Assembly: GCA_002269645.1 (NCBI GenBank) | Contig: NIVC01004754.1 | Span: 1 to 36,094 of the forward strand | DNA length: 36,094 nucleotides | Direction: 5' to 3' | Source of the DNA: Macrostomum lignano | Lineage: Eukaryota | Shown here: positions 5,291-32,112 of the stretch, in pieces | Layout: each line of letters starts with the position of its first letter | Position numbering within the stretch: the first letter of the stretch is position 1 | The notes under the pieces: generated by a model | What the model was told of the DNA's origin: nothing | What the model saw: the letters and a program-made list of their open reading frames with translations, nothing else | Databases searched by the model: none | Program-made: the position numbers and the translations under genes

Positions 5291-5619
5291 CCCCTCTTCT
5301 ATATTATTATCACTGTATATAATTTTTATAGTGGTAATTTTGTTTTTAGAGACTATAGAAGAGTGGCGTTGGGGATTTTTAAATTGAGTGTGTGAAAAAT
5401 TTGTTGTGAATTCGAAGTTTCCATGTTTTAAATGTTCCTGACTTAATCAAATTATTAAGAAAATAAAAAATGTATTTAAATAAAAATTACTAAAAATAAA
5501 AAAAAAAAATTTGACAACAAAAACAAAAAAATTCCATCTCCCAAACGTTTTGTAAAATAAAAGTAGAAAAAACTAATTTAAAAATGATTCATAAACTTTT
5601 CCAGCTACTAAAAACAATC

Positions 5620-5877
5620 ATGCTACTTCCCAAATCACTATTTCTGGCACTGCTATGCTCTGCCACTGTCACTATAGTGTCCTCCATCTCGCCCTGCTCT
5701 GTGGGCATTCCGCCAACCAGCTGTTCGGCCTGCATCAAATTGCACAGCTCCTGCGCCTGGTGCACAGACGAATCATTTGATGACAGTCGCATTGGGCCTC
5801 AGCACAGGTGCGGCACTAAGGCCGAGCTTAGGGACCGCGGCTGCATTCTCATGGAGTCGCCAGTTAGTCGCGCTGAG
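5620..5877 (+). CDS. ITGB: Integrin beta exon 1 (signal peptide + PSI domain)
   Basis: MLLPKSLFLALLCSATVTIVSS signal-like, PSI cysteines, donor GAG|GTGAGG at 5877/5878. Confidence 0.88.
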
Positions 5878-8800
5878 GTGAGGGAAGAAATGTACTTTTA
5901 CTCAATCTTGGTAGCCTTAGACTGTCTTTATTGGTCAATTATAGATGGATACGGATCAATGGTCTTCATGCAGACTTGCAACCCAATCACATCCGGCTCT
6001 ATATAGGACCACAACCTGTCACATCTGGCTCTTTATTGAGTCACAATCTGTCACATCTGGCTCCTTATTGAGTCACAACCTGTCACATCTGGCTCTTTAG
6101 TCTTTATAGTGGGTCACAACCTGTCACACCTGGCTATTTATAGTGGGTCACAACCTGTCACATCTGGCTCGTATTGAGTCACAACCTGTCACACCTGGCT
6201 ATTTATAGTGGGTCACAACCTGTCACATCTGGCTCTTTATAATGGGTCACAACCTGTCACATCTGGCTCTTTATTGAGTCACAACCTGTCACATCTGGCT
6301 CCTTATTGGGTTACAACCTGTCACATCCGGGTCCTTATTGGGTCACAACCTGTCAAATCTGGCTCTTTATTGAGTCACAACCTGTCACATCTAGCTTTTT
6401 ATAGTGGGTCACACCTGGCCCTTAATAGTCGATCACAACCCGGTCACACCTGGCCCTTAAAAGTTGATCACAACCTCTCAACCCTGGGTCCTGGATCCCT
6501 GGATCACAACTATTCCGCCTGGCTCCTCATGGTGAGTCACAACTTTTCACTCCTGGCTCCTTTAGTGAGTCACAATCTGTCACACCTGGCCCTTAATAAT
6601 GGGTCACAGCCTGTCACACGTGGCTCCTTAATCCGGTCACACCCAGCCCTATATAGTGGGTCACAACCCGTCGCGTCGCACTCTCGCACCAAAGTCGCCG
6701 TCTTCGATTCTGAGCCACATTAATCTGGGGCTCCAAGGCACGGAGTACATCAGCAGAGCATGTCTGACTGAGCCCCCACACTGCATCCCACAGCCCCACT
6801 TACAGAAGGCAACTGTTCAATGGCAATAGCAAATGTTCTTCCATCATGCACTATAATATCGTGAGAAAGTAAATAAATAATCTAAATAATAATCTTAAAT
6901 AAAGTCTCACTTATTTATTGTACTAGAACAATCTCTCGGGGATTGCATTTATGTAGCTATATTCATTCAGTTATGTTCCCATAACCATATCCGTAACTTC
7001 CCATAGCCGTTTCTATAGCTACGACAGAACTCTAGATAGGGCCAGAAGCTCGCAAATGAAGATTTATCACCCCTGTCCATCTGCACATTCCCAGATCATG
7101 CTCGACAACCCGCTGAGCGATAGCAACCAAATCAAGCCTCAAAATGTGAGCGTATGGGCCCGAACTCATCATTCAATCCAACTGGAATTCGAATTTAAGC
7201 AAGCTGAAAACTACCCGGTGGACATGTACATCCTGTCCGACAAGAGTCACAGTATGCGAGACTTTCTACAGTCCGTAGCCAACATGTCCGAGAAGATCCA
7301 GCAGACTCTGGGCGAGCTGACTCGCAACTGGCGCATCGGGGTCGGATTCTTTGTCGACAAGCCAGTGTTCCCCTACGTGCAGCCGAATCCGTCTGCTGCG
7401 CCCTGCGACTCTTTGGGCTTCGGCGAACGGTGCATCGACACCTTCAGCTATATTCACGCTATGGATTTGAGCCAGAATGTCGTCGAGCTTAAAGAAGTAA
7501 ATCTTCACCTTATTATATACCGATATGTAGCGTTATTACCTTTGGATGAGCTATATAAATGCTATGCTACCCTCCCAGGCTTTTAACTTTCATTTGTACC
7601 GTCGCTCGATAATTTGACCTTTATTTGTACTCTACTTACCCTAATTACGACGCGCTCTGACTCTTTAACCTTCATTTGTACCGGTGCTACCTTTGCCCGA
7701 CTCTTTAACCTTATTTGTACCGGTGCTACCTTTGCCCGACTCTTTAACCTTATTTGTACCGGTGCTACCTTTGCCCGACTCTTTAACCTTATTTGTACCG
7801 GTGCTACCTTTGCCCGACTCTTTAACCTTATTTGTACCGGTGCTACCTTTGCCCGACTCTTTAACCTTATTTGTACCGGTGCTACCTTTGCCCGACTCTT
7901 TAACCTTCATTTGTACCTGTGCTGCCCTTCCCCGACTCTTTAACCTTCATTTGTACCCTTCATTTGAAACTACGTTGTCTGACTAATTTAACTTTCATTT
8001 GTGCCTTTTCATACCCACATTAGGTCACAGCGGCCAAGACCATCTCGGCCAACCTGGACGCCCCCGAAGGCTCCCTAGACGCCCTACTGCAGGCGGTGAT
8101 CTGCCGCTCACAAATTGGTTGGCGATCGAATTCTCGCAAAGTGGTCCTGCTGGCTATTGATGGCGGCTTTCACATGGCTGGCGACGGCCGGTTTGGCGGC
8201 ATTATCGAACCGTTTCCCGAGTCGCAGTGTCACCTGGAGACGGGTAGGAATAAACTGAATGTTACTGGCAGTCTGGAGTACGTCAATGCCACCAGGTGCG
8301 TTAGAGATGTTTTTTGTAACTTGGCAACGGTTAGTTAATACTCAACTGAGCGAGGCGTGAGTGAATGAGGAGCGATTGTGAGAGGTGTGAATGAGTTGAG
8401 AAGTGAATGAGTGAGGAGTGATAAGTGAATGAGTGAGGAGCAAGTAGTGAATGAGTGAGGAGTGAGAGTGAATGAGTGAGGAGCAAGTAGTGAATGAGTA
8501 AGGAGTGAGAAGTGAATGAGTGAGGAGTGAGAAGTGAATGAGTGAGGGGTGAGAAGTGAATGAGTGAGAAGTGAATGAGTGAGGAGTGAGAAGTGAATGA
8601 GTGAGAAGTGAGTGAGTGAGGAGTGAGAAGTGAGTGAGTGAGAAGTGAGTGAGTGAGAAGTGAGTGAGTGAGGAGTGAGAAGTGAGTGAGTGAGAAGTGA
8701 GTGAGTGAGGAATGAGAAGTGAGTGAGTGAGAAGTGAGTGAGTGAGGAGTGAGAAGTGAGTGAGTGAGTGAGAAGTGAGTGAGTGAGGAGTGAGAAGTGA

Positions 8801-11800
8801 GTGAGTGAGAAGTGAGTGAGTGAGGAGTGAGAAGTGAGTGAGTGAGAAGTGAGAAGTGAATGAGTGAGAAGTTAATGAGTGAGGAGTGAGAAGTGAATGA
8901 GTGAGGAGTGAGTGAGTGAGGAGTAAGAAGTGAGTGAGTGAGGAGTGAGAAGTGAATGAGTGAGAAGTGAATGAGTGAGGAGTGAGGAGTGAGAAGTGAG
9001 TGAGTGAGGAATGAGAAGTGAGTGAGTGAGAAGTGAGTGAGTGAGGAGTGAGAAGTGAGTGAGGAGTGAGAAGTGAGTGAGTGAGGAATGAGAAGTGAGT
9101 GAGGAGTGAGAAGTGAGTGAGTGAGGAGTGAGAAGTGAGTGAGTGAGAAGTGAGTGAGTGAGGAATGAGAAGTGAGTGAGTGAGAAGTGAGTGAGTGAGG
9201 ACTGAGAAGTGAGTGAGTGAGGACTGAGAAGTGAGTGAGTGAGAAGTGAGAAGTGAATGAGTGAGAAGTTAATGAGTGAGGAGTGAGAAGTGAATGAGTG
9301 AGGAATGAGAAGTGAGTGAGTGAGAAGTGAGTGAGTGAGAAGTGAATGAGTGAGAAGTTAATGAGTGAGTGAGTGAGAAGTGAGTGAGTGAGGAATGAGA
9401 AGTGAGTGAGTGAGAAGTGAGTGAGTGAGGACTGAGAAGTGAGTGAGTGAGGACTGAGAAGTGAGTGAGTGAGAAGTGAGAAGTGAATGAGTGAGAAGTT
9501 AATGAGTGAGGAGTGAGAAGTGAATGAGTGAGGAATGAGAAGTGAGTGAGTGAGAAGTGAGTGAGTGAGAAGTGAATGAGTGAGAAGTTAATGAGTGAGT
9601 GAGTGAGAAGTGAGTGAGTGAGGAATGAGAAGTGAGTGAGTGAGAAGTGAGTGAGTGAGGACTGAGAAGTGAGTGAGTGAGGACTGAGAAGTGAGTGAGT
9701 GAGAAGTGAGAAGTGAATGAGTGAGAAGTTAATGAGTGAGGAGTGAGAAGTGAATGAGTGAGGAATGAGAAGTGAGTGAGTGAGAAGTGAGTGAGTGAGG
9801 ACTGAGAAGTGAGTGAGTGAGGACTGAGAAGTGAGTGAGTGAGAAGTGAGAAGTGAATGAGTGAGAAGTGAGTGAGTGAGGAGTGAGAAGTGAGTGAGTA
9901 AGGAGTGAGTGAGTGAGGAGTGAGAAGTGAGTGAGCGAGTGAGGAGCTAGTGGTTAGTTCACTCTGTCGTGATATTTCTGCTGTGACTCCTGTATATCTT
10001 TAGTTTAGGTTACTTATGGAAAAAACTACTTGAAAAATGGTTTTTAACAGTAGAACTACCAAGAGGGGGGATGACGGCGTCCGGGTGAAGACTGAATGCT
10101 TGAGATACTAGCTGAGGATTTCCGGCGGTTGAGGCTTGCCCATTATTGAAGCTTGATAAGAAAAATCTGACATATTTTCGCAAAATGATGTCCATAGTCA
10201 CCTGGTGTCATCTGTTGAAAGTACCGACGGCGTCGGGTGATGACGGAATGCTCGAGAGACCAGCTGAGGATACCTAGCAGTTGAGGTTTTCCACTGTCGA
10301 GGCTTGATCGGCGAAACTAGAGAAATTCGTATCAGGGTGTCGATAGTCACCGGTGCCATCTGTTGAAGGTCCAGAAGCTCCATCTGGGTGAAGGCCAGTG
10401 ACCAAAGAAGTGTTCAAGTTGCTGATAAAATTTGGAGGCTTGGCAAGGCTGCACTGAGGCGAAGTGCTAATTGGCGCACAGGGGTGTACTGAATACACTG
10501 GCGCTTATGGGAAAAATCCGAACTTCCGGCAGAATCGTCGAATATCTCGACGATCCAGAGGGCTGGCGACTTTATTCTTGTTTGAGAAGGTGCGCAACAA
10601 AAAGTTAGCCCGTGTTCTTGAACTTCGTGTGCCTGCGTTGCTCCAATACGGCGCAGCAAAAAAATTGTCAAGGGGGGATTTTCTTTACTGATAATAATTA
10701 ATTGATAAAACTTCAGATTTGACTATCCATCAATTGGGCAAGTTGCCAAGGTGCTCTCCGACGCCAAGGTGTCTGTAATATTCGCCTTGAAATCTGACAG
10801 CTACACGCCTCTGTACATGCAACTGAAGCACGCCCTGCCAGTGGTGACTGAAGTCGATCTGGTCACTAACGATAACGTATTGGAATTGATTAAAAAGAAT
10901 TATCGATCCATTGCTGAGACTGTTGAGATTCGGGCTAACGATCCTGGCCTATGGTTGAACATCACGTCCGAGGTTCGATGCCCCGGCGAGACCGATTTCA
11001 AATTGGGCAACAGGTGCCACCGAGTGCCGCTAGGAGCCACCGTGTCCTACAGGGCCACCGTCACCCTCACCAAGTGCCTGCCCCGGCCAGAAGAGATTGT
11101 ACATTTCGCGTCAACAACTTCTGACGATCGAATGGAAGTTCGAATTAAATCGCTGTGCAATTGTCCGGAGTGCGAGGCCAAAGCTAATCCTCTGCAGAAG
11201 GTGCCGAAGTGTCAGAATGTCGGGTGAGTTCTACCGTTTTGATTGCGTCATCCCTCAGAGCTTTAGTTAGCCAGCGCTGTACTTGGCTGTACGTAATTCT
11301 CGGAGTCGCTAGCACTTTTTGGATGACCTTAAAAGAGAAGAGAGGTGAGAGTGGGAGAAGAGAAGGCAGAGGAGAGAGGGACAAGAGAAAGGGGATGAGA
11401 GAGGGAGAAGAGAAAGGGGATGAGAGTGGGAGCAGAGAAGGGAGATGAGAGTGGGAGAAGAGAACGGAGATGAGATGAGAGAGGGAGAAGAGCAGGGAGA
11501 GGAGAGAGGGAGGAGAGAAGGGAGATGAGAGAGGGAGAAGAGAAGGGAGATGAGAGAGGGAGAAGAGAATGGAGATGAGAGAGGGAGAAGATAATGGAGA
11601 TGAGAGAGGGAGAAGAGAAGGGAGATGAGAGAGGGAGAAGAGAAGGGAGATGAGAGAGGGAGAAGAGAATGGAGATGAGAGAGGGAGAAGAGAAGGGAGC
11701 GGAGAGAGGGAGAAGAGAGAGGGAGAGGAGAGAGGGAGAAGATAAGGGAGAACAGAAGAAAGAGGAGAGAGGAGAGGAGAGAGAGGGGGAGAAGAGAGAG

Positions 11801-13651
11801 GAGATAGAAGATTAAAGAGTAGATTAGAGAGAAAAGAGCTGAGAAGAGCCGCAAACCTTGAGCAGGCCGGATTGATAGAGAGCAAGATAGAGAGGCTTGG
11901 TATCCCGCATGTGGCCGAAGTTGGCCGACACCTCAACTTAATAAATCTTAAAAATAACGATCAATGTTTTTTCTTTCCAACCCAGCCACCTGGAGTGCGG
12001 AGTATGCAGTTGCCATGGCAACTACAGCGGCGACTCGTGCCAATGCGACGCCCAGACCGGGTCCCAGGTTGACCAGTGCCACTCCGGCGACGTATCGAAT
12101 ATTTGCAGCAAGAACGGCCGGTGCGTGTGCAACAAATGCGTGTGCTACAAGGACAATTACTATGGCAAACTGTGCGAACTGGACAAGCTGTCCTGCCCGG
12201 ACTCCTGGGACACCAAGGAGCCCTGCGGCGGGCCCAGTCGAGGCGAATGCGACGGCAAAAGGACGTGCATTTGCAAGCCTGGCTACTCTGAGAAAGACTG
12301 CTCATGCTCAGACGCTAACAAGCTCAAACCGGACTGTCATTCTAAGAAAGAGCAATACAAAGATATGCAGTGCTCAAATCACGGCACCTGCATCTGCGGC
12401 CGATGCGTCTGCGAAGCCCTGTGGTCCTCTGATCCGCACTGCGACACCAAGGCTGGATCAACTGGCAGCCTGTGCAACGACGAAGGCCTCCGCCGATGCG
12501 TTGAGTGCGTGTTCAATCATCGGAAACTGGCGCCCGAGGACCGGCAGACCCAGTGCAACTGCAGCCTGGTTGAGGAGGGCGTCTGGATTGACGCTAGCAA
12601 GTGGGTGTCTCTGGCGTCTGTTCGTTCTAAGCTTTTTGAAAAATTAGTGCGGAATCTAAAATATGAGATTAGAGAGAATCTAGCAGATGAGATGACAGAG
12701 ATTGGGATTGGATTAGTAGAAATATTATTAAGAATGGTATCGGATTAGATTAGACAATCTATAAGATTAAATAGACTAGGAGATGAGACTAGAGAATTTA
12801 GGAAATGAGATTGGAGAGAATCCAAGGGATGAGATTAGAGAGAATCTAGGCAATGAGATTAGAGAGAATCTAGGAGATAAGATTGAAGAGAATCTAGGAA
12901 TTGAGATTAGAGATAATCTAGAAAATGAAGTTCGAGATAATCTAGAAAATGAGATTAGAGCATCTAGAAAATGATATTAGACACACAATTAACGAGATGA
13001 GATTAGAAGAGAACCTAGAAAATGAGATTAGAGTATCTACGAGTAGATGAGACTAGAGATAATTTAAATCAGATAAAAGAGAAACTATATATGATTAGAT
13101 CAGATCTTGGTCAAGACTAAAGTAAACCTAGGGTGTTATGATAGATGTTAGGAGAGATTGGAGGAAGTCGAAGTTGTGAGACTAGAGAAAATATTGGTGA
13201 GATTAGAAGCTAATATTAACAGCCTCATGCCTGCTCATCCCTAATTAGGATCCAGTTGACTCCCCAAAGCGAGGTGATCAACGACAAGAGCACCTGCGTG
13301 CTCAACATGGCCAACGAGTGCAGCCTCTTGTACGGCTACATCATCGGGGACGGCAGCATTGGCAGCAGGTCTATTCGCAACATGACGCTGTTCATCCAGG
13401 AGGAGAAGCAGTGCCGCGACCGGGTGTCTCCGCTCATTCTCGTGCTCATCGTAGTAGCCGCCGTGGTAATTGTCGGCATCATCATCCTGCTGATTTGGAA
13501 GGCTCTGATCACGATATCCGACCGGCGAGAGTTCGCCAAATTCAAGAGTCAGACTCAGAACTCCGCCTGGGGCGCCGGGGAGAATCCGGTCTATCGAGAT
13601 CCCAACACCACCGTCACTAATCCCGTGTTTGCCGGCAAGAACGACTTTTGA
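5620..13651 (+). CDS. ITGB: Integrin beta subunit (beta1/betaPS-like), 6 exons: join(5620-5877,7095-7496,8024-8295,10717-11223,11986-12600,13249-13651), 818 aa
   Basis: All five introns are GT-AG with matching phases (0,0,2,2,2); the CDS is 2457 nt with no internal stop. Domains in order: signal peptide, PSI (CSACIKLHSSCAWC), betaI with MIDAS DKSHS, FVDK, SANLDAPEG, DGGFHMAGDG, DYPSIGQ; hybrid; four I-EGF; beta-tail; TM; cytoplasmic tail with NPVY and NPVF motifs. Confidence 0.95.
6005..6720. repeat. Intronic minisatellite, 32-34 bp unit (CACAACCTGTCACATCTGGCTCTTTATTGAGT)
   Basis: About 20 copies, degenerating rightwards, in integrin intron 1. Confidence 0.9.
7095..7496 (+). CDS. ITGB: Integrin beta exon 2 (hybrid/betaI start, MIDAS)
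   Basis: Acceptor CCCAG|ATC, donor GAA|GTAAAT; contains YPVDMYILSDKSHSM and GFFVDKPVFPY. Confidence 0.92.
7660..7960. repeat. Intronic minisatellite, 39-bp unit (CTCTTTAACCTTATTTGTACCGGTGCTACCTTTGCCCGA)
   Basis: About 6 near-perfect copies plus degenerate flanks in integrin intron 2. Confidence 0.92.
8024..8295 (+). CDS. ITGB: Integrin beta exon 3 (betaI domain)
   Basis: Acceptor ATTAG|GTC, donor AG|GTGCGT; ISANLDAPEGSLDALLQ, IGWR, DGGFHMAGDG, CHL. Confidence 0.92.
8345..9950. repeat. Complex GAGT/GAGAAGT microsatellite (~1.6 kb) in integrin intron 3
   Basis: Continuous run of GAGT, GAGAAGT and GAGGAGT units with almost no C; 230-bp higher-order period at 9161/9391/9621. Confidence 0.95.
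10717..11223 (+). CDS. ITGB: Integrin beta exon 4 (betaI end, hybrid, start of I-EGF1)
   Basis: Acceptor TTCAG|A, FDYPSIGQ...SVIFA...LCNCPEC, donor GG|GTGAGT. Confidence 0.92.
11330..11835. repeat. Purine-rich (GA) minisatellite, ~25-bp unit GAGAGGGAGAAGAGAAGGGAGATGA, integrin intron 4
   Basis: Direct inspection; source of the Leu/Ser-rich minus-strand ORFs. Confidence 0.9.
11986..12600 (+). CDS. ITGB: Integrin beta exon 5 (I-EGF1-4, beta-tail start)
   Basis: Acceptor CCCAG|C; repeated CxxxGxCxCGxCxC EGF pattern; donor AA|GTGGGT. Confidence 0.92.
12660..13210. repeat. Degenerate ~24-bp minisatellite (GAAAATGAGATTAGAGAGAATCTA) in integrin intron 5
   Basis: Repeated GAGATTAGAGA..AATCTAG cores. 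Confidence 0.8.
13249..13651 (+). CDS. ITGB: Integrin beta exon 6 (beta-tail, TM, cytoplasmic tail)
   Basis: Acceptor ATTAG|G; TM LILVLIVVAAVVIVGIIILLIWK; SDRREFAKF; NPVY; NPVF; TGA at 13649-13651. Confidence 0.93.
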
Positions 13652-16252: not shown

Positions 16253-16461
16253 TTAATCCAGGTACCAAACGCAGTCGGGCCCTTTGTTGGCCACGCCGGT
16301 CAGCTTGCCATTTCTAATAGCCAGGTAGCGCTGGCCGAACTTGGCAAAAATCACCACCGCCCTGCGGCCGTCCGTGGACTCCTCGTCCGAGATCAGCAGC
16401 CACTCTTCGGCGCCGTAGTGCTGGCCCTTCGTGTAGATGTAGTCACCGTTCGGGTCGTAGC
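16253..16461 (-). CDS. TIR/beta-trefoil gene exon 4 (last)
   Basis: Acceptor CCCCCAG|GC; GYDPNGDYIYTKGQHYGAEEWLLISDEESTDGRRAVVIFAKFGQRYLAIRNGKLTGVANKGPDCVWYLD*. Confidence 0.85.
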
Positions 16462-19330
16462 CTGGGGGAGATAGTGATTATCAGAGTGAGGGAGATAATG
16501 ATTATCAGAGTGAGGGAGATAATGATTATCAGAGTGAGGGAGATAATGATTATCAGAGTGAGGGAGATAATGATTATCAGAGTGAGGGAGATAATGATTA
16601 TCAGAGTGAGGGAGATAATGATTATCAAAATGAGGGAGATGATGATTATCCAAATGGGGAAGATAATGATGATCAGGGTGAGGGAGATAATGATTATCAA
16701 AATGGGGAAGATAATGATTATCAGGGTGAGGGAGATAATGATTATCAGAGTGAGGGAGATAATGATTATCAGAGTGAGGGAGATAATGATTATCAGAGTG
16801 AGGGAGATAATGATTATCAGAGTGAGGGAGATATTGATTATCAGAGTGAGGGAGATAATGATTATCAGGGTGAGGGAGATAATGATTATCAAAATGGGGA
16901 GATAATGATTATCAGAGTGAGGGAGATAATGATTATCAGAGTGAGGGCGATAATGATTATCAGAGTGAGGGCGATAATGATTATCAGAGTGAGGGAGATA
17001 ATGATTATCAGAGTGAGGGAGATAATGATTATCAGAGTGAGGGAGATAATGATTATCAGAGTGAGGGAGATATTGATTATCAGAGTGAGGGAGATAATGA
17101 TTATCAGAGTGAGGGAGATAATGATTATCAAAATGAGGGAGATGATGATTATCCAAATGGGGAAGATAATGATTATCAGGGTGAGGGAGATAATGATTAT
17201 CAAAATGGGGAGATAATGATTATCAGAGTGAGGGAGATAATGATTATCAGAGTGAGGGCGATAATGATTATCAAAGTGAGGGCGATAATGATTATCAGAG
17301 TGAGGGAGATAATTATTATCAGAGTGAGGGAGATATTGATTATCAGAGTGAGGGAGATAATGATTATCAGAGTGAGGGAGATATTGATTATCAGAGTGGG
17401 GGAGATAATGATTATCAGAGTGAGGGAGATAATGATTATCAGGGTGAGGGAGATATTGATTATCAGAGTGAGGGAGATAATGATTATCAGAGTGAGGGAG
17501 ATATTGATTATCAGAGTGAGGGAGATAATGATTATCAGAGTGAGGGAGATATTGATTATCAGAGTGAGGGAGATAATGATTATCAGAGTGAGGGAGATAT
17601 TGATTATCAGAGTGGGGGAGATAATGATTATCAGAGTGAGGGAGATAATGATTATCAGAGTGAGGGAGATATTGATTATCAGAGTGAGGGAGATAATGAT
17701 TATCAGAGTGAGGGAGATATTGATTATCAGAGTGAGGGAGATAATGATTATCAGAGTGAGGGAGATAATGATTATCAGAGCGCATAATGATTGGGACTGT
17801 GATGCAGAGTCATATTCAGCCTCACTCACCGAGGTACTGCTTAGTTTGGTAGTTGCGGAAGTAGTGGATCTCAGACTTGGGCTCCAGCTTGCTCTCCTCC
17901 CAGTAGCTGGTGTCCTCGGGCGTGTCTCGCAGCACCAGGGTGCTCCGGCTGCCGCTAGCCTGGTGGTGCTTCACCTCGCCTGCGCATGGGGGAATGATAG
18001 AGGTGTTTGCGTCTTATTGATATGCAAGGCTGTGCAAATGTCATCATTTCTTTGGTAGCTTGTTAATGTACCGACGATCTGGAATGCCTTCGAGCGCGTT
18101 ATCATGTCATTTACATGTGCATGAACATAAACTTGAACCGATTAGGGAGTTAGGGTTGCCGATTAGGGTATTAGGGTATTAGGGATTGCAAACAAAGGAC
18201 AATTTAAGTTTGCCAATTAAGGTATTAGGGTTTGTCAATTAGGGCATTAGGGCATGCCAATTAGGGTGCTAGAGACTCCAATTAGGGTTCAATTGACGCC
18301 AGTTAGAGATACTAATTCGGACATTAGGGCCAGCGAATTCGATGAAGCACTAGCGCCAAATTGAAAGCGAGGCCTATAAACTAATTGAATAAATGCTACA
18401 ACAATATTAACACCCCTAACTCTGACTCACCCGATTCGGCCAGAAATTTTCCCAACTGGCTGTGCCTGAAAGCTCGGCCGGGTTTCTTCTTCAAATCCAC
18501 CTTGAGCGCCGGAGGCTGGGATGGACTGGCCTGGCCAATTTTGAGTTTGTCTCCGGCAGCGTGGATGATTTCTTTAGTAAGCGACACGATGCTGTTGTCG
18601 AAGGCCTCATCACGTCGGAAGTCCATCCAGAGCAGTCCGGCCGTGATGATGCCCAACCAGCCGGTGGCCTTGAACTTCAGCTCGGCCATGGCCGGCACGA
18701 TTGGGACGTCGCGAGCGTCGGCATAGTTGAGCTCCTTCTTGCAGTTTTTGGACTCCTGGTACTTGGCAGTGATGAACGGGCATACCACCGCTGCGTTGTC
18801 TACGCCTGCGGCCATGCTGTGGTTGTTTTGGGGAGAGTGCCAGTTCAGTTTAGGGGAGTGCCAGTTCAGTTTAGGGGAGTGCCAGTTCAGTTTAGGGGAG
18901 CCTTTTCAGTTTAGGGGAGTGCCATTTTAGTTTAGGAGAGTGCCATTTTAGTTTAGGGAAGTGCCTTTTCAGTTTAGGGGAGTGTCGTGGGATTAAATTA
19001 TAACTGGAGCGCCTTGATTTAATTTTTAATTGTTAGATCATGTTGCCTTGTATTTATATGCAAATTCTTCCATGCACAGCTTTGGCTCTACTACTCATAC
19101 TTCTACTTTATGCCAGTACTATACTACTTCTCCTACTGTAAGTAGCTTATTAGAGTATATTTAAAATTAAAGCTGCCTTTTAAGCTATATATATACCTGT
19201 CATTGATGTTACCGCTCATTCCACCATGGATGTCCATCCACACGGCGATTCCCTGAGACTGGAGGGCTTCGTAAACTTTCTTGACAAGGGCCTGCTTGTC
19301 CCACTGGTACGAGAGCATCACGTGACTCAT
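16253..19330 (-). CDS. TIR-domain protein with C-terminal predicted beta-trefoil domain, 4 exons: complement(join(16253-16461,17830-17979,18431-18816,19197-19330)), 292 aa
   Basis: Three GT-AG introns with matching phases (2,1,1); CDS 879 nt ending in TAA. N-terminus MSHVMLSYQWDKQALVKKVYEALQSQGIAVWMDIHGGMSGNINDSMAAGVDNAAVVCPFITAKYQESKNCKKELNYA...GWLGIITAGLLWMDF fits the invertebrate TIR_2 pattern. The C-terminus has three pseudo-repeats with (G/K/R)x(F/Y)L...W. Confidence 0.9.
16470..17780. repeat. 24-bp minisatellite (GAGGGAGATAATGATTATCAGAGT) x~54 filling intron 3 of the TIR gene
   Basis: Direct inspection; each unit contains the palindrome GATAAT-G-ATTATC. Confidence 0.95.
17830..17979 (-). 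CDS. TIR/beta-trefoil gene exon 3
   Basis: Acceptor GCGCAG|GC, donor G|GTGAGT; 150 nt; EVKHHQASGSRSTLVLRDTPEDTSYWEESKLEPKSEIHYFRNYQTKQYL. Confidence 0.85.
18142..18329 (+). repeat. Degenerate telomere-like tract (11 TTAGGG hexamers in ~190 bp) in TIR gene intron 2
   Basis: TTAGGG at 18142, 18150, 18163, 18171, 18179, 18225, 18239, 18247, 18261, 18282 and 18324. Confidence 0.8.
18431..18816 (-). CDS. TIR/beta-trefoil gene exon 2 (bulk of TIR, linker, start of trefoil)
   Basis: Acceptor CCACAG|C, donor G|GTGAGT; matches ORF 18396-18815. Confidence 0.9.
18830..18985. repeat. 21-bp minisatellite (GGGGAGTGCCAGTTCAGTTTA) x~7 in TIR gene intron 1
   Basis: Direct inspection; abuts the exon 2 acceptor. 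Confidence 0.9.
19197..19330 (-). CDS. TIR/beta-trefoil gene exon 1 (coding)
   Basis: ATG at 19330; MSHVMLSYQW...VWMD TIR box-1-like motif; donor AG|GTATAT. Confidence 0.88.
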
Positions 19331-19593: not shown

Positions 19594-22063
19594 CGAGTGG
19601 AACTCCTCCTCTGGAGGAGAAAGGGGAAGAACTCCCATCACCGGAATTCTGAAGGGGAAGAACTCCCATCACCGGAATTCTGAAGGGGAAGAACTCCCAT
19701 CACCGGAATTCTGAAGGGGAAGAACTCCTATCAGCTGAAATTCCATGAATTGAATCCCATCTTCCAAATCATCTCCAAATCCTCTACAATCTATCAACTC
19801 CCATCTCTCATCTCTTGCGCCCTGCGCTCTGATTTTTATTTTTACTCTCTTCTTTCTTCTCACTAATTACTCCTCTCTACACTTTCATCTCTCTCATCTC
19901 TGATCTTTCATCTCTATTCTCCCTCCTCTCTCCCTTCTCTCGCTTCTTTCTCTCCTCTATTCCTACTCTTCTCGCTTATCTCTACTCACTTATCTATCGT
20001 CTCCGCTCTACTTTCTCTCTTCCCTTTTCTCTCTTCTCTCTGCTATCATTTCTCGTATCTCTTATACGCTCTCACCCTCTCCTTTCTTATCTACCATCTT
20101 TCTTCCTTCCTTTCTACTGCATCACCTGTCTCCTCGCCTCTCTTTTCTCTCCTCTCCATTCTCTCTTCTCTCCTCTCATCTTCCCTCATCTCTTCTCTAA
20201 TCTCTAATCTCTCCTCTCTCATATCTCTTCTCTACTCACTTATCTATTCTCTCTCCTCTGCTCCCTTTTTACACTTTCCTATATGCTCTCACTCTCACCC
20301 TCTCCTTTCTTATCTCCTGTTTTTTACACTCCTTTCTACCACCTGTCTCCTCTCGTTTCTCTCCTCTCTGCACTCTCATCTTTACCCTCTTCTTTCTCCT
20401 CACTACTTTCTTCTCTTAAATCTCTGATCTCTGATCTTTCATCTCTCTCCTCTCACCTCTCTCCTCTCTTTCCTCTCTTCTATTGCCTCTGTACGCTCTT
20501 ATCCCTCTTTTCTTCTCTCTCCTGTCTCCTCTCTGCTATCTCATATCTCCTCTCTCATATCCTCTCCCTTCATCTCCTCTCCCCTCTTCTCTTCTCTCTC
20601 CTTCGTTGCCGCCTTACTCCCCTCTTCTCTCCCGTCTGTCATGTCTAATCTCTCCACTCATTTCTACTCTGTTTTCTATCATCTAATCTCTCTTCTCTTT
20701 TCATTATTCTCTTTACTCTCTTCTCTGACTGATTGAAGATGCCAAATCCATCATGATCCTCTCCGCGAAGCAGAAATCTTGTCTGTGCAACTGAAAACCA
20801 TCGAAATCCTCTCCGTGAAACTGGACTCCTTCGAATCCTCTCCTTGAAACTTAAATCCATCAAAATCGTCTCCATAAAACAGAAATCAATCATAAATTAT
20901 CTCCGCGAAACAGAAATCCTCTCCGTGAAGCTGAACATCATCGAAATCCTCTCTTCATGAAACTGAACACTATCGAAATCCTCTCCACGATACAGAAATC
21001 CTCTCCGTCAAAATTAAAACATTGAAATCATCTCCGCTAAACTGGACTCAATAGAATTTTTTTCCGTCAAACAACTCAACTCTCCGGATTCATTGGTTAG
21101 GGTTAGGGTTAGGGTTAGGGTTAGAACTACGCACAGCTTTCTGTTAAGGCACTGATAAAAATATTGAACTAATTGAATCAATTCATTGCGCAACCGATTT
21201 CACAGTCAGTCAGTATCAGTCTCAGTTAAAGTTAACAAAAACATTGCGCAATCTAAATCAACCCTCCAATACACAGCAGCAGTGAGAAGTTGAACCCTCC
21301 CCCAACTTTATCTATTACGTCTCGCAAAACTGAGTACAATTTTTGCAGAAAGTTAAAAGTATGGAAATAGTGTTTTAAATGCTGTGCTTTTTCTTTTCAT
21401 ATTTCAAGCATACAACTTATATCCTCAAACTCTGCGTTGCAAGCTCTTTCCAGCAATATAAGTGTCTCCTCTAAAAGTTTAAAACTCGAGGAACAGTTAG
21501 CGTTTGAAATTTACCGATTTCCCGACTTCTTGCTAGAGAAGCTCGCAAGTTTATTCATTGAATTTCACTGCCAAACTAATACACAGGACTGCCTATGGAA
21601 AAAAGGCGCCAATAATAAAACCAAATGAATCTCGACACAGTCTATCTATTTACACTGTACAACTGCTATGTACACTCAGTCCAAGCCCAACCCCCGTTCT
21701 GGGGGAAGCGTTAAATTTAACTCAACCCCCCAACACGCGGGGGGTTTTATTTGCATTGAACGCAGAACACGCGCACCCACCACCCCTCAATACACAGCGG
21801 CCCGCGGGCGGAGGTTGGGGTGGCTACTTTTACAAACTGGCTGCAGCCCCAGGCAGAGTAGCAAAAGAAGGTTATTGGGGGTCAAGAATGCAGTTTTCTG
21901 CTTTTTTGAGGATCTTAGAAATTAAAATTTCAGAATTAAAATAGCCTATAGCCGACCTCGGATAATTTCCAATCTTCCCATATAAGTTTCAACGCTGAGT
22001 TGGCACTATTCAAGGAGGAGTTGTCGAAATGACAGACAAACAACACGTGAACTTTAGTATATG
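19594..22063 (-). mobile_element. Helitron-like array copy 1 (2470 bp, most diverged, edge copy)
   Basis: Hairpin 19603-19619 with a changed loop; 31-bp internal tandem 19621-19735; TTAGGG x4 at 21097-21120; unique GC-rich segment ~21640-21880. Confidence 0.72.
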
Positions 22064-24275
22064 TAAGTGGAACTCCTCCTTCGGAGGAGAAAGGGGAAGA
22101 ACTCCCATCACCGGAATTCTATTCCCTGAAATATCCATCAACTGAAATTGCATGTCTTCAACCCTATCTTCCAAATCGTCTCCAAATTCTTTACAAAATC
22201 TTTCAAAGACCATAGCTCAAAGACTCTCAAGTCTCTCATATCTCCTCTCTCCTCTCTCTCATCTCATCTCTACCCCTGCTCCCTTATTTATCTCTTCTCC
22301 CTCGTCTTTCGTCTGTACCTTCTCCTGTCTTCTGTCTCCTCTCTTCACTCTTATCTCTCCCTCTTCTCTCCTCTCTCATATGTCATCTCTACTCACTTAT
22401 CTATCGTCTCTCTTAACCCTCTCTCTCTCTTCTCTTTTCTCTTCTCTCTGCTCTCATTTCTCATATTTCATATACGCTCTGACACTACTTTCTTGTCTCC
22501 CATCTTTCTTCCTCCTTTTCACTATCCCCTGTCTCTTCTCCTCTCTCTTTTCTATTCTCTCCATTCTCTCTTTTCTCCTTTCCTTGCTCCTTTCATCTCT
22601 CTCCTCTCTCCTCACTCTCTTCTCCTTTCGCTTCTCTCTCCTCTCTCTCCTCTCATCTTTACTACCTTATTTATATCTTCTCCCTAGTCTTTCGTCTGTA
22701 CTCTCTCCTGTCTCCTCTCTCCCCTCCTCTCTCATCCCTCATCTCCTCATCTCACTCTTTCTTTCTCCTCTACTCTCCCCTCTCTTCTATTGCCTCTGTA
22801 CGCTCTTATCCCTCATCTATTCTCTCTCCGATCATCTCCAATCTGTCATGTCTAATCTCTCCACTCAATTATACTCTGTTTTCTATCATCTCTTCTCTCT
22901 TCTCTTTTCAGTCTTCTCTTTACTCTCTTCTCTGACTGATTGAAGATGCCAAATCCATCAAGATCCTCTCCGCGAAGCAAAAATCCTGTCTGTGCAACTA
23001 AAAACCATCGAAATCCTCTCAGTGAAACTGGACTCCTTCGAAATCCTCTCCTTGAAACTTAAATCCATCAAAATTGTTTCCATAAAACAGAAATCAATCA
23101 TAAATTATCTCCGCGAAACAGAAAGCCTCTCCGTGAAGCTGAACATGATCGAAATCCTCTCCGTGAAACTGAACACCATGGAAATCCTTTCGTGAAACTG
23201 AACATCATCGAAATCCTCTCCACGAAACAGAAATCTTCTCCGTCAGAATTTAAACATTGAAATCGTCTCCGCTAAACTTGACTTAATCGAATTTTTTCCG
23301 TCAAACAACTCAACTCGCCAGATTCATTAGGGCTAGGGTTAGGGTTAGGGTTAGGGTTAGGGTTAGAACTACGCACAGCTTCGTGTTAAAAGGCACAGAT
23401 AAAAATATTGAACTAATTGAATCAATTCATTGCGCAACCGATTTCACAGTCAGTCAGTATCAGCCTCAGGTAAAGTTAACAAAAACATTGCGCAATCTAA
23501 ATCAACCCTCCAATACACAGCAGCAGTGAGAAGTTGAACCCTCCCCCCAACAATCTTTGCAGATTAAAGTACAATCTTTGCAGAAAGTTAAAAGTATGGA
23601 AATAGTTTTTCAAATGCTGTGCTTTTTCTTTTCATATTTAAAGCAAACAACTTATATCCCCGAACTCAGCGTTGCAAGATCTTTCCAGCAATATAAGTTT
23701 CTCCTCTCAAAGTTTAAAACTCGAGGAACAGTTAGCGTTTGAAACTTTCTGATTTAAAGCATTGAAGTATCGAGTGTACGTTCACTGCCTGCTTGCAAGT
23801 TGATGCATTGAATTTCAATGTCCAACAAATACACAGGACTGCCCATTGAAAGGCAGGAAAACTTATCAGTAGCCATATCATTGCGCAATTATCTATAAAG
23901 TCAGCCAGTGAGCCAGGGTCCAAGTGTACACACGCAGCCACTGAGAACGCTCCCACCCCCCACTGGAAAGAAAATACACTACAGAGATAGGGAAAAGTTG
24001 TGGCGCAATCACTAAAAATTCATGCATTTTTCAGCTCCAAGCAGAAAGAGGGGACAATTAAGATTATCAAAGGTCAAGACCGCCGTTTTCTGCTTTTTTG
24101 AGGATCTTAGAAATTAAAATTTCAGAATTAAAATAGCCTATAGCCGACCTCGGATAATTTCCAATCTTCCCATATAAGTTTCAACGCTGAGTTGCCACTA
24201 TTCAAGGAGGAGTTGTCGAAATGACAGACACACAGACAGACAGACAGACAAACAACACGTCAACTTTAGTATTAA
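22064..24275 (-). mobile_element. Helitron-like array copy 2 (type A, ~2212 bp, one internal module)
   Basis: Near-identical to copies 4 and 6; telomeric tract 23327-23362. Confidence 0.75.
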
Positions 24276-26722
24276 CGAGTGGAACTCCTCCTTCGGAGGA
24301 GAAAGGGGAAGAACTCCCATCACCGGAATTCCATTCCCTGAAATCCATCAGCTGAAACTCCATGACTTGAATCCCATCTTCCAAATCGTCTCCAAATTCT
24401 TTACAAAACCTTTGAAAGACCATAGCTCAAAGACTCTCACGTCTCTCATATCTCCTCTCTCCTCTCTTCGCTATTATCGTGACTCTCTTCTCTCTCCTCT
24501 CTCTCATCTCATCTCTACCCCTACTCCCTTATTTATATCTTCTCCCTGGTCTTTCGTCTCTACTCTCTCCTGTCTCATTTCTCCCCTCTTTTCTCCTCTC
24601 TTCTCTCTCCCCTCTCCTCCCTCATCTCTCATCCTTCATCTCACTCTTTCTTTCTTCTCTACTCTCCCCTCTCATCTATTTCCCCTGTACGCTCTTATCC
24701 CTCATCTCTATTCTCTCTCCTATCATCTCTCCAAATTCTTTACAAAACCTTTCAAATACCATAGCTCAAAGACTCTCACGTCTCTCATATCTCCTCTCTC
24801 ATATCTCTTCCCTCATCTCACTCTTTCTTTCTCCTCTACTCTCCCCTCTCTTCTATTTCCTCTGTACGCTCTTATCCGTCATCTATTCTCTTTCCTATTA
24901 TCTCTCTTGTCTCCCTCTGCTATCTCATATCTCCCTCTCATCTCCTCTCTCCTCTTCTCTTCTCTCTCCCTCTTCGTTTCCGCCTTACTCCCCTCTTCTC
25001 TTCCATCGGTCATGTCTAATCTATCCACTCATTTCTACTCTGTTTTATACCATCTCATGTCTCTTCTCTTTTCGATCTTCTCTTTACTCTCTTTTATGAC
25101 TGATTGAAGATGCCAAATCTATCAAGATCCTCTCCGCGAAGCAGAAATCCTCTCCGTGAAACTGAAAACCATTGAAATCCTCTCCGCGAAACAGAAATCC
25201 TCTCCGTGAAACTGAAAACCATCGAAATTATCTCTTTAAAACTGGACTCAATCGAAATTTTCTCCGTCAAAAAGAATAAAATATTAGGATTCATTGGTTA
25301 GGGTTATTGTTAGGGTTAGGGTTAGGGTTAGAGCTACACACAGCTGCGTGTTTAAATAAAAAATTGAGCCAATTGAATCAATTGATTGCGCAACCGATTT
25401 CAAAGTCAGTCAGTATCAGTCTCGGTAAAGTGAACAAAAAGATTGCGAAATTTAAATCAACCCTCCAGTACACAGAGACCGGCCCCTTTTCAATACGCAG
25501 TGGCAGTTAGAAATTTAACCCGGGTGTTGGGGGCATTGAACTAAAAATGAGTACAATCTTTGCAGAAAGCTAAAAGTATGGAAATAGTTTTTGTATGCTG
25601 TGCTTTTAGTCTTTATATTTAAAGCAAACAATTTATATCCTCGAACTCAGCGTTGCAAGATCTTTTCAGCAGTATAAGTCTCTTCTCTTAAAGTTTAGAA
25701 CTCGAAGAGCAGTTAGCGTTTGAAAGTTCCCGTTTTAAAGCATTGAAATATCGAGTGTACGTTCACTGCCTGCCAAAGAGGCTCGCAAGTTTATTCATTC
25801 ATTACACAGGCCGGCTATTACACAGGGCAGCCTATTAAAAGGCACAGATAATGAAAAAAATTGATGTCGCAACCGATTTCACAGTCAGTCATTATCAGTC
25901 TCAGTTAAAGTTAACAAAAACATTGCGCAATATAAATCAACCCTCCAATCCACAGCAGTAGTGAGAAGTTGAACCCTCCCCCCAACTTTATCTATTTCGT
26001 CTCGCAAAACTGAGTACAATATTTGCAAAAAGTTAAAGTATGGAAATAGTTTTTCAAATGCTGTGCTTTTTCTTTTCATATTTAAAGCAAACAACTTATA
26101 TCCCGAACTCAGCGTTGCAAGATCTTTCCAGCAATATAAGTTTCTCTTTTCAAAGTTTAAAACTCGAGGAACAGTTAGCGTTTAAAACTGTCTGATTTAT
26201 TGCATTGAAGTATCGAGTGTACGTTGACTGCCTGCTTGCAAGTTGATGCATTGAATTTCAATGTCCAACAAATACACAGGGCTGCCCATTGAAAGGCAGG
26301 AAAACTTATCAGTAGCCATATCATTGCGCAATTATCTATACAGTCAGCCAGTGAGCCAGGGTCCAAGTGTACACACGCAGCCACTGAGAACGCTCCCACC
26401 CCCCACTGGAAAGAAAATACACTACAGAGATAGGGAAAAGTTGTGGCGCAATCACTAAAAATTCATGCATTTTTCAGCTCCAAGCAGAAAGAGGGGACAA
26501 TTAAGATTATCAAAGGTCAAGATTCAAGTTTTCTGCTTTTTTGAGGATCTTAGAAATTAAAATTTCAGAATTAAAATAGCCTATAGCCGACCTCGGATAA
26601 TTTCCAATCTTCCCATATAAGTTTCAACGCTGAGTTGGCACTATTCAAGGAGGAGTTGTCGAAATGACAGACAGACACACAGACAGACAGACAAACAACG
26701 CGTCAACTTTAGTATATATAGA
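24276..26722 (-). mobile_element. Helitron-like array copy 3 (type B, 2447 bp, two internal modules)
   Basis: Modules ~25350-25830 and ~25838-26280; interrupted telomeric tract 25298-25327. Confidence 0.75.
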
Positions 26723-28977
26723 CGAGTGGAACTCCTCCTTCGGAGGAGAAAGGGGAAGAACTCCCATCACCGGAATTCTATTCCCTGAAATATCCATCAA
26801 CTGAAATTCCATGTCTTTAACCCTATCTTCCAAATCGTCTCCAAATTCTTTACAAAATCTTTCAAAGACCATAGCTCAAAGACTCTCAAGTCTCTCATAT
26901 CTCCTCTCTCCTCTCTCTCATCTCATCTCTACCCCTGCTCCCTTATTTATCTCTTCTCCCTCGTCTTTCGTCTGTACCTTCTCCTGTCTTCTGTCTCCTC
27001 TCTTCACTCTTATCTCTCCCTCTTCTCTCCTCTCTCATATGTCATTTCTCTTACTTATCTATCGTCTCTCTTAACCCTCTCTCTCTTCTCTTTTCTCTCC
27101 TATCTGCTTCTCATTTCTGATATCTCATATACGCTCTGACACTACTTTCTTTCTTGTCTCCCATCTTTCTTCCTCCTTTTCACTATCCCCTGTCTCTTCT
27201 CTTCTCTCTTTTCTATTCTCTCCATTCTCTCTTTTCTCCTTTCCTTGCTCCTTTCATCTCTCTCCTCTCTCCTCACTCTCTTCTCCTTTCGCTTCTCTCT
27301 CCTCTCTCTCCTCTCATCTTTACTACCTTATTTATATCTTCTCCCTAGTCTTTCGTCTGTACTCTCTCCTGTCTCCTCTCTCCCCTCCTCTCTCATCCCT
27401 CATCTCCTCATCTCACTCTTTCTTTCTCCTCTACTCTCCCCTCTCTTCTATTGCCTCTGTACGCTCTTATCCCTCATCTATTCTCTATCCTATCATCTCC
27501 AATCTGTCATGTCTAATCTCTCCACTCAATTATACTCTGTTTTCTAGCATCTCTTCTCTCTTCTCTTTTCAGTCTTCTCTTTACTCTCTTCTCTGACTGA
27601 TTGAAGATGCCAAATCCATCAAGATCCTCTCCGCGAAGCAAAAATCCTGTCTGTGCAACTAAAAACCATCGAAATCCTCTCAGTGAAACTGGACTCCTTC
27701 GAAATCCTCTCCTTGAAACTTAAATCCATCAAAATTGTTTCCATAAAACAGAAATCAATCATAAATTATCTCCGCGAAACAGAAAGCCTCTCCGTGAAGC
27801 TGAACATGATCGAAATCCTCTCCGTGAAACTGAACACCATGGAAATCCTTTCGTGAAACTGAACATCATCGAAATCCTTTCGTGAAACTGAACATCATCG
27901 AAATCCTCTCCACGAAACAGAAATCTTCTCCGTCAGAATTTAAACATTGAAATCGTCTCCGCTAAACTTGACTTAATCGAATTTTTTCCGTCAAACAACT
28001 CAACTCGCCAGATTCATTAGGGTTAGGGTTAGGGTTAGGGTTAGGGTTAGGGTTAGAACTACGCACAACTTTGTGTTAAAAGGCACAGATAAAAATATTG
28101 AACTATTTGAATCAATTCATTGCGCAACCGATTTCACAGTCAGTCAGTATCAGCCTCAGGTAAAGTTAACAAAAACATTGCGCAATCTAAATCGACCCTC
28201 CAATACACAGCAGCAGTGAGAAGTTGAACCCTCCCCCCAACAATCTTTGCAGATTAAAGTACAATCTTTGCAGAAAGTTAAAAGTATGGAAATAGTTTTT
28301 CAAATGCTGTGCTTTTTCTTTTCATATTTAAAGCAAACAACTTATATCCCCGAACTCAGCGTTGCAAGATCTTTCCAGCAATATAAGTTTCTCCTCTCAA
28401 AGTTTAAAACTCGAGGAACAGTTAGCGTTTGAAACTGTCTGATTTATAGCATTGAAGTATCGAGTGTACGTTCACTGCCTGCTTGCAAGTTGAAGCATTG
28501 AATTTCAATGTCCAACAAATACACAGGGCTGCCCATTGAAAGGCAGGAAAACTTATCAGTAGCCATATCATTGCGCAATTATCTATACAGTCAGCCAGTG
28601 AGCCAGGGTCCGATTGTACACAGGCAGCCATTTAGAACGCCCCATCCCCCACTGGAGAGAAAATACACTGCAGAGATAGGGAAAAGTTGTGGCGCAATCA
28701 CTTGAAATTCATGCAAATTTTCAGCTCCAAGCAGAAAGAGGGGACAATTAAGATTATCAAAGGTCAAGATTCAAGTTTTCTGCTTTTTTGAGGATCTTAG
28801 AAATTAAAATTTCAGAATTAAAATAGCCTATAGCCGACCTCGGATAATTTCCAATCTTCCCATATAAGTTTCAACGCTGAGTTGGCACTATTCAAGGAGG
28901 AGTTGTCGAAATGACAGACAGACATACAGACAGACATACAGACAGACAAACAACGCGTCAACTTTAGTATATATAGA
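26723..28977 (-). mobile_element. Helitron-like array copy 4 (type A, 2255 bp)
   Basis: Exact junctions at both ends; (TTAGGG)6 at 28017-28052. Confidence 0.78.
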
Positions 28978-31900: not shown

Positions 31901-32112
31901 GTCAAGATCGTTTTCTGCTTTTTTGAGGATCTTAGAAATTAAAATTTCAGAATTAAAATAGCCTATAGCCGACCTCGGATAATTTCCAATCTTCCCATAT
32001 AAGTTTCAACGCTGAGTTGGCACTATTCAAGGAGGAGTTGTCGAAATGACAGACAGACATACAGACAGACATACAGACAGACAAACAACGCGTCAACTTT
32101 AGTATATATAGA
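28978..32112 (-). mobile_element. Helitron-like array copy 5 (type B, 3135 bp, three internal modules)
   Basis: Modules start ~30295, ~30789 and ~31211; (TTAGGG)5 at 30239-30268. Confidence 0.78.

Follow-up and report, generated by a model that had tools for sequence, protein, structure and literature searches.

The gene and its structure

The window analysed here is the whole of contig NIVC01004754.1 (36,094 nucleotides) from the flatworm Macrostomum lignano, assembly GCA_002269645.1. On its minus strand lies a four-exon gene, bounded by an ATG at 19330-19328 and a TAA stop at 16255-16253, that encodes a soluble, cytosolic two-domain protein in which a TIR domain is connected by a short variable linker to a beta-trefoil. 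The protein belongs to an ancient holozoan family. An integrin beta subunit gene and arrays of tandem repeats share the window with it.

Exon 1 (19197-19330; all exons and introns are given for the minus strand) encodes residues 1-44 and two nucleotides of codon 45, and ends at the donor AG/GTATAT. It contributes the TIR beta-A strand (MLSYQW), the alpha-A helix and the BB-loop region, as placed by tblastn and by an intron shared with Nematostella and Megalops. Intron 1 (18817-19196; 380 nt, GT-AG, phase 2) carries a 21-nt tandem repeat at 18827-18984. Exon 2 (18431-18816) encodes residues 45-173 and one nucleotide of codon 174; it completes the TIR domain to residue 135 (18816-18546), supplies the linker at residues 136-156 (18545-18483) and, in its 3' part, begins the first trefoil strands from residue 157 (18482-18431). 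The GAG codon of Glu73, within a CKKEL motif, lies in this exon at 18732-18734. Intron 2 (17980-18430; 451 nt, GT-AG, phase 1) has degenerate ATTAGGG-type repeats; between about 18140 and 18300 they form degenerate ATTAGGG/TTAGGG-like units, similar to telomere repeats, with short spacers. Exon 3 (17830-17979) encodes residues 174-223 and one nucleotide of codon 224, in which trefoil subdomain alpha ends (TSYW) and subdomain beta begins (HYFRNYQTKQYL). Intron 3 (16462-17829; 1368 nt, GT-AG, phase 1) consists almost entirely of a minisatellite with a 24-nt unit, GGGAGATAATGATTATCAGAGTGA, present in 54.9 copies with 93% matches at 16466-17780. Exon 4 (16253-16461) encodes residues 224-292 and the TAA stop, and completes subdomain beta (GYDPNGDYIYTKGQHYGAEEW) before adding subdomain gamma (VIFAKFGQRYLAIRNGKLTGV...DCVWYLD). 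About 290 bp upstream of the ATG, a 31-nt tandem repeat (19621-19733; 3.6 copies, 98% matches) presumably falls in the promoter or 5' region of the gene.

The gene is confirmed as real and intact. Joined from four phase-compatible exons, as the first-pass annotation had proposed, the coding sequence spans 879 nt in frame and translates into the 292 amino acids claimed, the only stop being the terminal one; the ATG is preceded by another stop in the same frame, and all three introns begin with GT and end with AG. GC content is 52-61% in the exons versus 38-42% in the introns and 41% in the window. A tblastn search of the product against the window returns the four exon blocks only, with no second copy. 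The UniRef entry A0A1I8GCP2 (M. lignano, “TIR domain-containing protein”) is 100% identical over the full length (E 2e-197), and full-length relatives of about 285-300 amino acids are 45-69% identical over 99-100% of their length; 35 of them align gap-free over all three exon junctions. Full-length identity to A0A1I8GCP2 together with this cross-phylum identity excludes chance as the source of the open reading frame (ORF).

Repeat-rich DNA of this kind invites the suspicion that the gene is an artefact or a pseudogene, with exons joined by chance. The locus minisatellites do generate spurious ORFs: that of intron 3 yields them on both strands and up to 298 amino acids long, and because it separates exons 3 and 4 its long spurious ORFs conceal both exons in the ORF list, which bears out the earlier remark that these exons were hidden among repeat-derived ORFs. 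Neither AATAAA nor ATTAAA occurs within 550 nt past the stop codon, and a record search for a transcript contig encoding exactly the 292-amino-acid product found none. Against an artefact stand the intact frame, the canonical splice junctions and the gap-free orthologue alignment at every junction. For many orthologues the source contig is also about 1 kb long, approximately transcript size, and codes for the full-length protein. Exon structures were moreover rebuilt for the genes of Nematostella vectensis (locus L001) and Megalops cyprinoides (locus L002). In the shared alignment, M. lignano introns fall at columns 50 (phase 2), 206 (phase 1) and 260 (phase 1); those of Nematostella at columns 50 (phase 2), 71 (phase 0), 123 (phase 2), 206 (phase 1) and 260 (phase 1); and those of Megalops at columns 50 (phase 2), 123 (phase 2), 206 (phase 1) and 260 (phase 1). 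Each flatworm intron thus matches a cnidarian and a teleost intron in codon and phase, which makes all three ancient. A chance assembly of exons is thus extremely improbable and is effectively refuted.

Domain architecture

The TIR-trefoil family was modelled with AlphaFold2 from a 35-sequence alignment. The whole-chain model (predicted local distance difference test, pLDDT, 91.1; predicted template modelling score, pTM, 0.88) resolves into a TIR domain at residues 1-135, a linker at 136-156 and a trefoil at 157-292. Its lowest-confidence part is the BB-loop region, as in other TIRs. The pTM implies that the two domains are docked in a predicted fixed mutual arrangement. Kyte-Doolittle hydropathy over 19 residues reaches at most 1.07, so no transmembrane segment is present, and the start of the TIR beta-A strand at residue 3 leaves no signal peptide; both points make it a soluble protein of the cytosol. 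This agrees with the initial description, which had also recognized the Pro/Ser/Lys-rich linker, a variable segment with only 10-33% identity across orthologues.

Pfam hits and the AlphaFold2 model reveal no domains besides TIR, linker and trefoil within the 292 residues. Neither the transmembrane segment plus leucine-rich repeat or immunoglobulin ectodomain of Toll-like receptors (TLRs) and IL-1 receptors nor the death domain of MyD88 is present in the protein. Foldseek comparison with viral structures returned separate trefoils (baculovirus FGFs and pandoravirus fascin-like proteins) and one giant-virus TIR; among the viral matches listed none spans both domains, each covering about 130-190 aligned columns with one low-quality exception.

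An orphan beta-trefoil

The C-terminal region had been put forward as a beta-trefoil from three pseudo-repeats, and the model upholds that assignment. DSSP finds 12 strands between residues 159 and 291, and Foldseek matches the domain with probability 1.0 to Symfoil and related designed trefoils derived from FGF-1 (target-normalised TM-score 0.84-0.85, root-mean-square deviation 1.9-2.1 Å). Other structural matches are SeviL (E 5e-7), BEL, actinohivin, MOA and fascin 6i10. The three pseudo-repeat motifs quoted at the outset are all present in their places, and each repeat closes with an invariant tryptophan (W200, W244 and W289).

Established trefoil families do not accommodate the domain. A resemblance to the mussel lectin MytiLec, also suggested at first sight, found no support: MytiLec is outside the top 50 structural matches and gives no sequence match, the one hint at sequence level pointing to another lectin, SeviL, without significance. 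The HPxGG sugar-binding motif of mytilectins occurs nowhere in the 292 residues, as had been observed, and membership of that family was rejected on these three grounds. Membership of the R-type lectins (ricin-B/CBM13) was rejected as well; none of the full-length members has PF00652 or PF14200 on record, and in place of QxW the trefoil has SYW, EEW and CVW, which retain only the Trp of each motif. The fascins have four trefoils in tandem, which form their actin-binding sites, versus one here, and fascin 6i10 matches at E 2.3e-5 and rank 48. The IL-1/FGF cytokines were set aside given fusion to a TIR domain, lack of a signal peptide or transmembrane segment and a likeness to FGF-1 that is structural only; where IL-1 proteins carry an (F/L)ES motif in strand 9 (10.1101/2025.07.17.662885), this trefoil reads AVVIFA.

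Sequence searches lead to the same place. A search of the PDB with the whole protein gave only noise (antibody V domains, with SeviL non-significant at E 0.38), and the trefoil profile found nothing significant there, SeviL being best at E 0.044. An exhaustive HMMER search with the trefoil against 1.84 billion representative proteins returned 79 hits, nearly all of them TIR-trefoil family members or single-exon fragments; other trefoil architectures were also sought by a word-indexed profile search. Few variants emerged: a Pigoraptor protein (P0105) has the trefoil behind a non-TIR, SAM-like N-terminus whose SAM similarity is weak (Sfmbt SAM, E 0.45), another form (P0181) has, by eye, an N-terminal hydrophobic, transmembrane-like segment, and a third (P0201) carries a long insertion. 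Three multi-repeat hits (P0193, P0194 and P0224) were dismissed by eye as repetitive junk. P0217, a bacterial sulfatase whose sequence has three trefoil-like repeats (E 9e-6), and P0221, which has multiple trefoils, are distant relatives at most. Precomputed hits assign no Pfam family to the trefoil half. On the evidence of these searches the trefoil is an orphan at the sequence level.

The TIR domain and its proposed activity

The TIR domain, first placed at about residues 1-130, extends over residues 1-135. PF13676 (TIR_2) is precomputed for the protein and nearly all orthologues. In the PDB the TIR profile matches the CRISPR-associated Cat1 best (3.7e-6), followed by SARM1 (5e-4) and Hydra TRR-2 (2e-3), and it also matches the TIRs of RPS4 and Roq1; among PADLOC models it matches ThsB (2.5e-6) and SAVED-TIR (1.2e-5). 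A TIR-only AlphaFold2 model (residues 1-135, pLDDT 91) has the flavodoxin-like alpha/beta fold of TIRs, with a parallel sheet from beta-A to beta-E and a BB loop. Foldseek matches it with probability 1.0 to many TIR structures at TM-scores up to 0.81, including the SARM1 TIR (0.79-0.81, root-mean-square deviation 2.1 Å), RPS4, Hydra TRR-2, SPARTA TIR-APAZ, RUN1 and AbTir. Glu73, in CKKEL, is invariant in the 35 aligned orthologues from filasterean to fishes, and alignments pair it with catalytic Glu642 of SARM1 (KEI) and with the CWDEL glutamate of Cat1. By profile and motif, the TIR resembles the enzymatic TIRs Cat1, SARM1 and ThsB.

We tentatively read the protein as a ligand-gated TIR effector with Glu73-dependent NAD+ chemistry, a reading to which we give slightly less than an even chance. 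The trefoil would serve as a ligand-binding or regulatory module, and ligand binding would release or nucleate self-association of TIR domains, which would assemble a composite active site around Glu73. The TIR could then break down NAD+ or turn it into a signal, and the outcome would be a response to stress, an immune response or cell death. Such a pathway would be independent of TLRs and MyD88, like those of SARM1, plant TIR proteins, Thoeris ThsB, TIR-SAVED and Cat1. A sensor-effector role is plausible.

Several observations weigh against this reading. The aromatic residue (Trp) four positions before the catalytic glutamate lines the NAD+ pocket of enzymatic TIRs, and a glutamate at the catalytic position is necessary, not sufficient, for NADase activity. 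The aromatic at that position is W638 in SARM1 and the corresponding W in SDWCWDEL of Cat1; in this family the position is Asn69, or Ser in fishes (SKNCKKEL and SRSCKKEL motifs), and the DWVH of SARM1 is an insertion relative to the family TIR profile. Structure scores are similar for enzymatic and scaffold TIRs, the TIR-only model also matching Hydra TRR-2 (3.6e-6), MyD88 (4e-5), MAL (1.5e-4) and TLR1 in Foldseek. No sugar-binding motif is demonstrable in the trefoil, and the weak SeviL alignment covers residues 68-129 when the sugar site of SeviL is at 21-39 (PMC7744527).

The missing tryptophan and the structural proximity of scaffold TIRs speak for a non-enzymatic scaffold or adaptor that signals solely by TIR-TIR assembly with other TIR proteins. 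In such a protein the trefoil would localise it to a membrane lipid, a glycan or the cytoskeleton, or bind a protein partner; beta-trefoils often bind proteins, actin and lipids, and fascin and FGF are among the structural matches here. Sequence profiles, however, place enzymatic TIRs first, and Glu73 is retained in all 35 aligned orthologues. The family is also kept where its obvious partners are reportedly lacking: M. lignano has 0 TLRs (PMC8609888, Table 1), and acoels are without TLR and MyD88 (PMC12849515), but a family member (P0037) persists in the acoel Convolutriloba. A Toll-pathway adaptor is therefore unlikely, and a scaffold role in general we regard as possible, on the unlikely side.

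Distribution, conservation and the possible nature of the signal

Outside M. lignano, the family occurs in anthozoan and scyphozoan cnidarians, annelids (Owenia and Dimorphilus), a nemertean, an acoel and many teleosts from elopomorphs to percomorphs. A full-length orthologue with 60% identity (P0026) is recorded in a filasterean, EukProt “Opistho-2”, which is Pigoraptor chileana (PMC7147346); if this record is not contamination, the sequences would make the TIR-trefoil family older than animals. Family and trefoil profile searches returned no member from a mammal, bird, insect, nematode or mollusc, and no large lineage-specific expansions. The idea of a lineage novelty was discarded, since the family is old, widely conserved and already in databases, where it is named for its TIR only. 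Within M. lignano itself, a 195-residue entry (P0080, A0A1I8F900, “EamA domain-containing protein”) is nearly identical to parts of the protein with apparent frameshifts; its name is misleading, and it probably represents either a damaged gene or a faulty gene model made on another copy of the genome.

The flatworm protein is 63% identical to that of Nematostella. By part, identity to the flatworm protein is 58-68% for the TIR and, outside fishes, 60-73% for the trefoil; the teleost trefoil is only 33-49% identical. In percomorph fishes (e.g., orthologues P0052-P0081) the trefoil motif DPNGDY-YTK-QHYGAEEW, the best conserved one of invertebrates, has decayed to forms like DPSSDKVHSEASPSVSEEW, and the TIR is still about 58-62% identical despite this decay, a pattern in the sequences that may reflect alteration or relaxation of the ligand site in fishes. 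Trefoil conservation across the other phyla speaks against a receptor engaged in an arms race with pathogen effectors. Because the trefoil is so highly conserved, its ligand would probably be a conserved small molecule or glycan and not a fast-evolving pathogen protein.

Such conservation, both between flatworm and Nematostella and as far as the filasterean, is higher than is usual for immune receptors and also fits a housekeeping or metabolic regulator: an NAD+-linked, SARM1-like enzyme in which an auto-inhibitory trefoil reads an endogenous metabolite, with a role in stress-induced or developmental cell death. This alternative has its enzyme step in common with the ligand-gated effector proposed above. 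The whole-chain pTM suggests that the trefoil packs against the TIR, as expected of an auto-inhibitory domain, and the lack of large lineage-specific expansions in the searches points the same way. The distribution tells against it, the patchiness described above fitting dispensable defence genes better than core metabolism. We consider a housekeeping or metabolic role fairly improbable, also in view of the modules to which related TIRs are attached.

In the bdelloid rotifers Adineta and Rotaria (P0093-P0098), a TIR 50% identical to that of the flatworm (2e-42) is followed by a C-terminal RicinB_lectin_2 domain, a canonical, nearly perfect three-fold (QxW)3 trefoil (PF14200). Alignment of the rotifer and family trefoils by hhalign gives a probability of 0.2%, that is, no detectable homology. 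The sequences thus suggest that a trefoil C-terminal to this TIR type was kept, or re-acquired with a different sequence. In a 426-residue protein from a Logan assembly (P0102), a TIR of the MLSYQWD type is N-terminal to NB-ARC (PF00931), which like the lectin-type trefoil is a typical immune sensor module; in Amphiura filiformis (P0104) such a TIR precedes a long non-trefoil C-terminal region. The rotifer and NB-ARC fusions place this TIR type repeatedly N-terminal to sensor-like modules, and the sequences suggest that it is a reusable effector module.

Significance

The first-pass annotation did not recognize the architecture as that of a characterised animal protein, and this stands: databases name the TIR only, and the literature searched describes neither the family nor its function and mentions no TIR-trefoil protein together with NAD+, although the ecTIR-DC groups of Gerdol et al. 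(2017) may list it. The gene is already in databases; its architecture and the reach of that architecture are undescribed. A 2020 survey groups such proteins in a mixed “group 18”, and a 2026 TIR atlas reports several uncharacterised eukaryote-only clades that are common in cnidarians and other non-model animals (PMC13142454). The present analysis defines one unstudied eukaryotic TIR family concretely, as two-domain proteins of about 290-300 amino acids that keep 60-70% identity between a flatworm, cnidarians and a protist related to animals and are also found in many food and model fishes. Since the trefoil has no Pfam family, Pfam-based genome surveys would be expected to see only the TIR; surveys of cnidarians have a “TIR-only” class.

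Among animal TIRs that cleave NAD+, SARM1 is the well-characterised one. The TIR-trefoil family may constitute a second ancient enzymatic TIR lineage beside it, a free-standing cytosolic switch that would consume NAD+ or produce an NAD-based signal, be gated by an orphan lectin-like trefoil and work without TLRs or MyD88, maintained all the way from unicellular filastereans to teleosts; we advance this broader proposal as a doubtful one. If true, it would give animals a counterpart of plant TIR-only proteins and of bacterial TIR sensor-effector defence proteins. Survival of the family in flatworms, reportedly without TLRs, and in acoels, reportedly without TLR and MyD88, makes it a candidate for TIR signalling in such animals. 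The system lends itself to experiment: the protein is soluble and of modest size, and Macrostomum, Nematostella and teleosts allow tests of gene function.

Surrounding sequence

A multi-exon integrin beta subunit gene occupies 5584-13651 on the plus strand, upstream of and convergent with the TIR gene. By eye, its exon-like ORFs open with a PSI-like segment rich in Cys (5584-6006) and further include EGF-like repeats, likewise Cys-rich (about 11964-12748), and a transmembrane segment with NPxY-type tail motifs (13256-13651); a beta-I domain with a DxSxS motif at 7056-7586 matches integrin beta-3 (E 2.5e-22). Long purine-rich minisatellites of GAGTGA type and AAGAGAAGGGAG type lie among its exon-like ORFs at 8348-9939 and 11333-11805. 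They are probably intronic in the integrin gene and cause extreme GC skew, up to +0.91. From 20620 to 36094 a unit of about 2.2 kb is present in seven or more tandem copies, spaced 2164-3137 nt apart and 60-100% identical. These units have a strong excess of C over G on the plus strand, long Ser/Leu-rich pseudo-ORFs and internal repeats of 111-140 nt; a satellite and a degenerate mobile element are the candidates for their nature.

Comparison with known systems

Among animal proteins the TIR-trefoil protein is most readily compared with SARM1. Both are cytosolic and have a bacterial-like TIR of PF13676 type in which E73 corresponds to E642, and regulation of the TIR by a non-TIR domain is likely here. 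SARM1 differs in combining ARM and two SAM domains with a C-terminal TIR, whereas the TIR here is N-terminal, ARM and SAM domains are lacking and the regulatory module would be a beta-trefoil; the W638 equivalent is missing and sequence similarity is remote (E 5e-4). The bacterial proteins Cat1, TIR-SAVED, TIR-STING and Thoeris ThsB share the two-module logic of a TIR with a ligand-binding domain, which in our protein is predicted. Their sensors are CARF, SAVED and STING domains that bind cyclic nucleotides, not trefoils, and the present family is holozoan-only, with ancient spliceosomal introns and no operon context.

Further comparisons are with proteins that have a lectin-type module. The bdelloid rotifer proteins have the same order of N-terminal TIR, linker and C-terminal trefoil in about 310-336 amino acids and retain the CK(D/K)EL glutamate, but their trefoil is of the non-homologous ricin type. 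SeviL and R-type lectins have a single trefoil domain of about 130 amino acids with a Trp closing each subdomain; our protein differs from them in lacking QxW, in its non-significant sequence match and in being cytosolic and fused to a TIR. MytiLec shares the beta-trefoil fold class only. Arabidopsis PP2-A5, as cited in PMC12355970, is likewise a small soluble protein linked to defence, with an N-terminal TIR and a C-terminal lectin-type domain. Its lectin domain is a PP2 beta-sandwich and its TIR belongs to a plant-specific clade; the two fusions arose independently. By analogy, the TIR-trefoil protein would work most like SARM1, plant TIR proteins and the bacterial TIR fusions, while its architecture departs from that of each of them.

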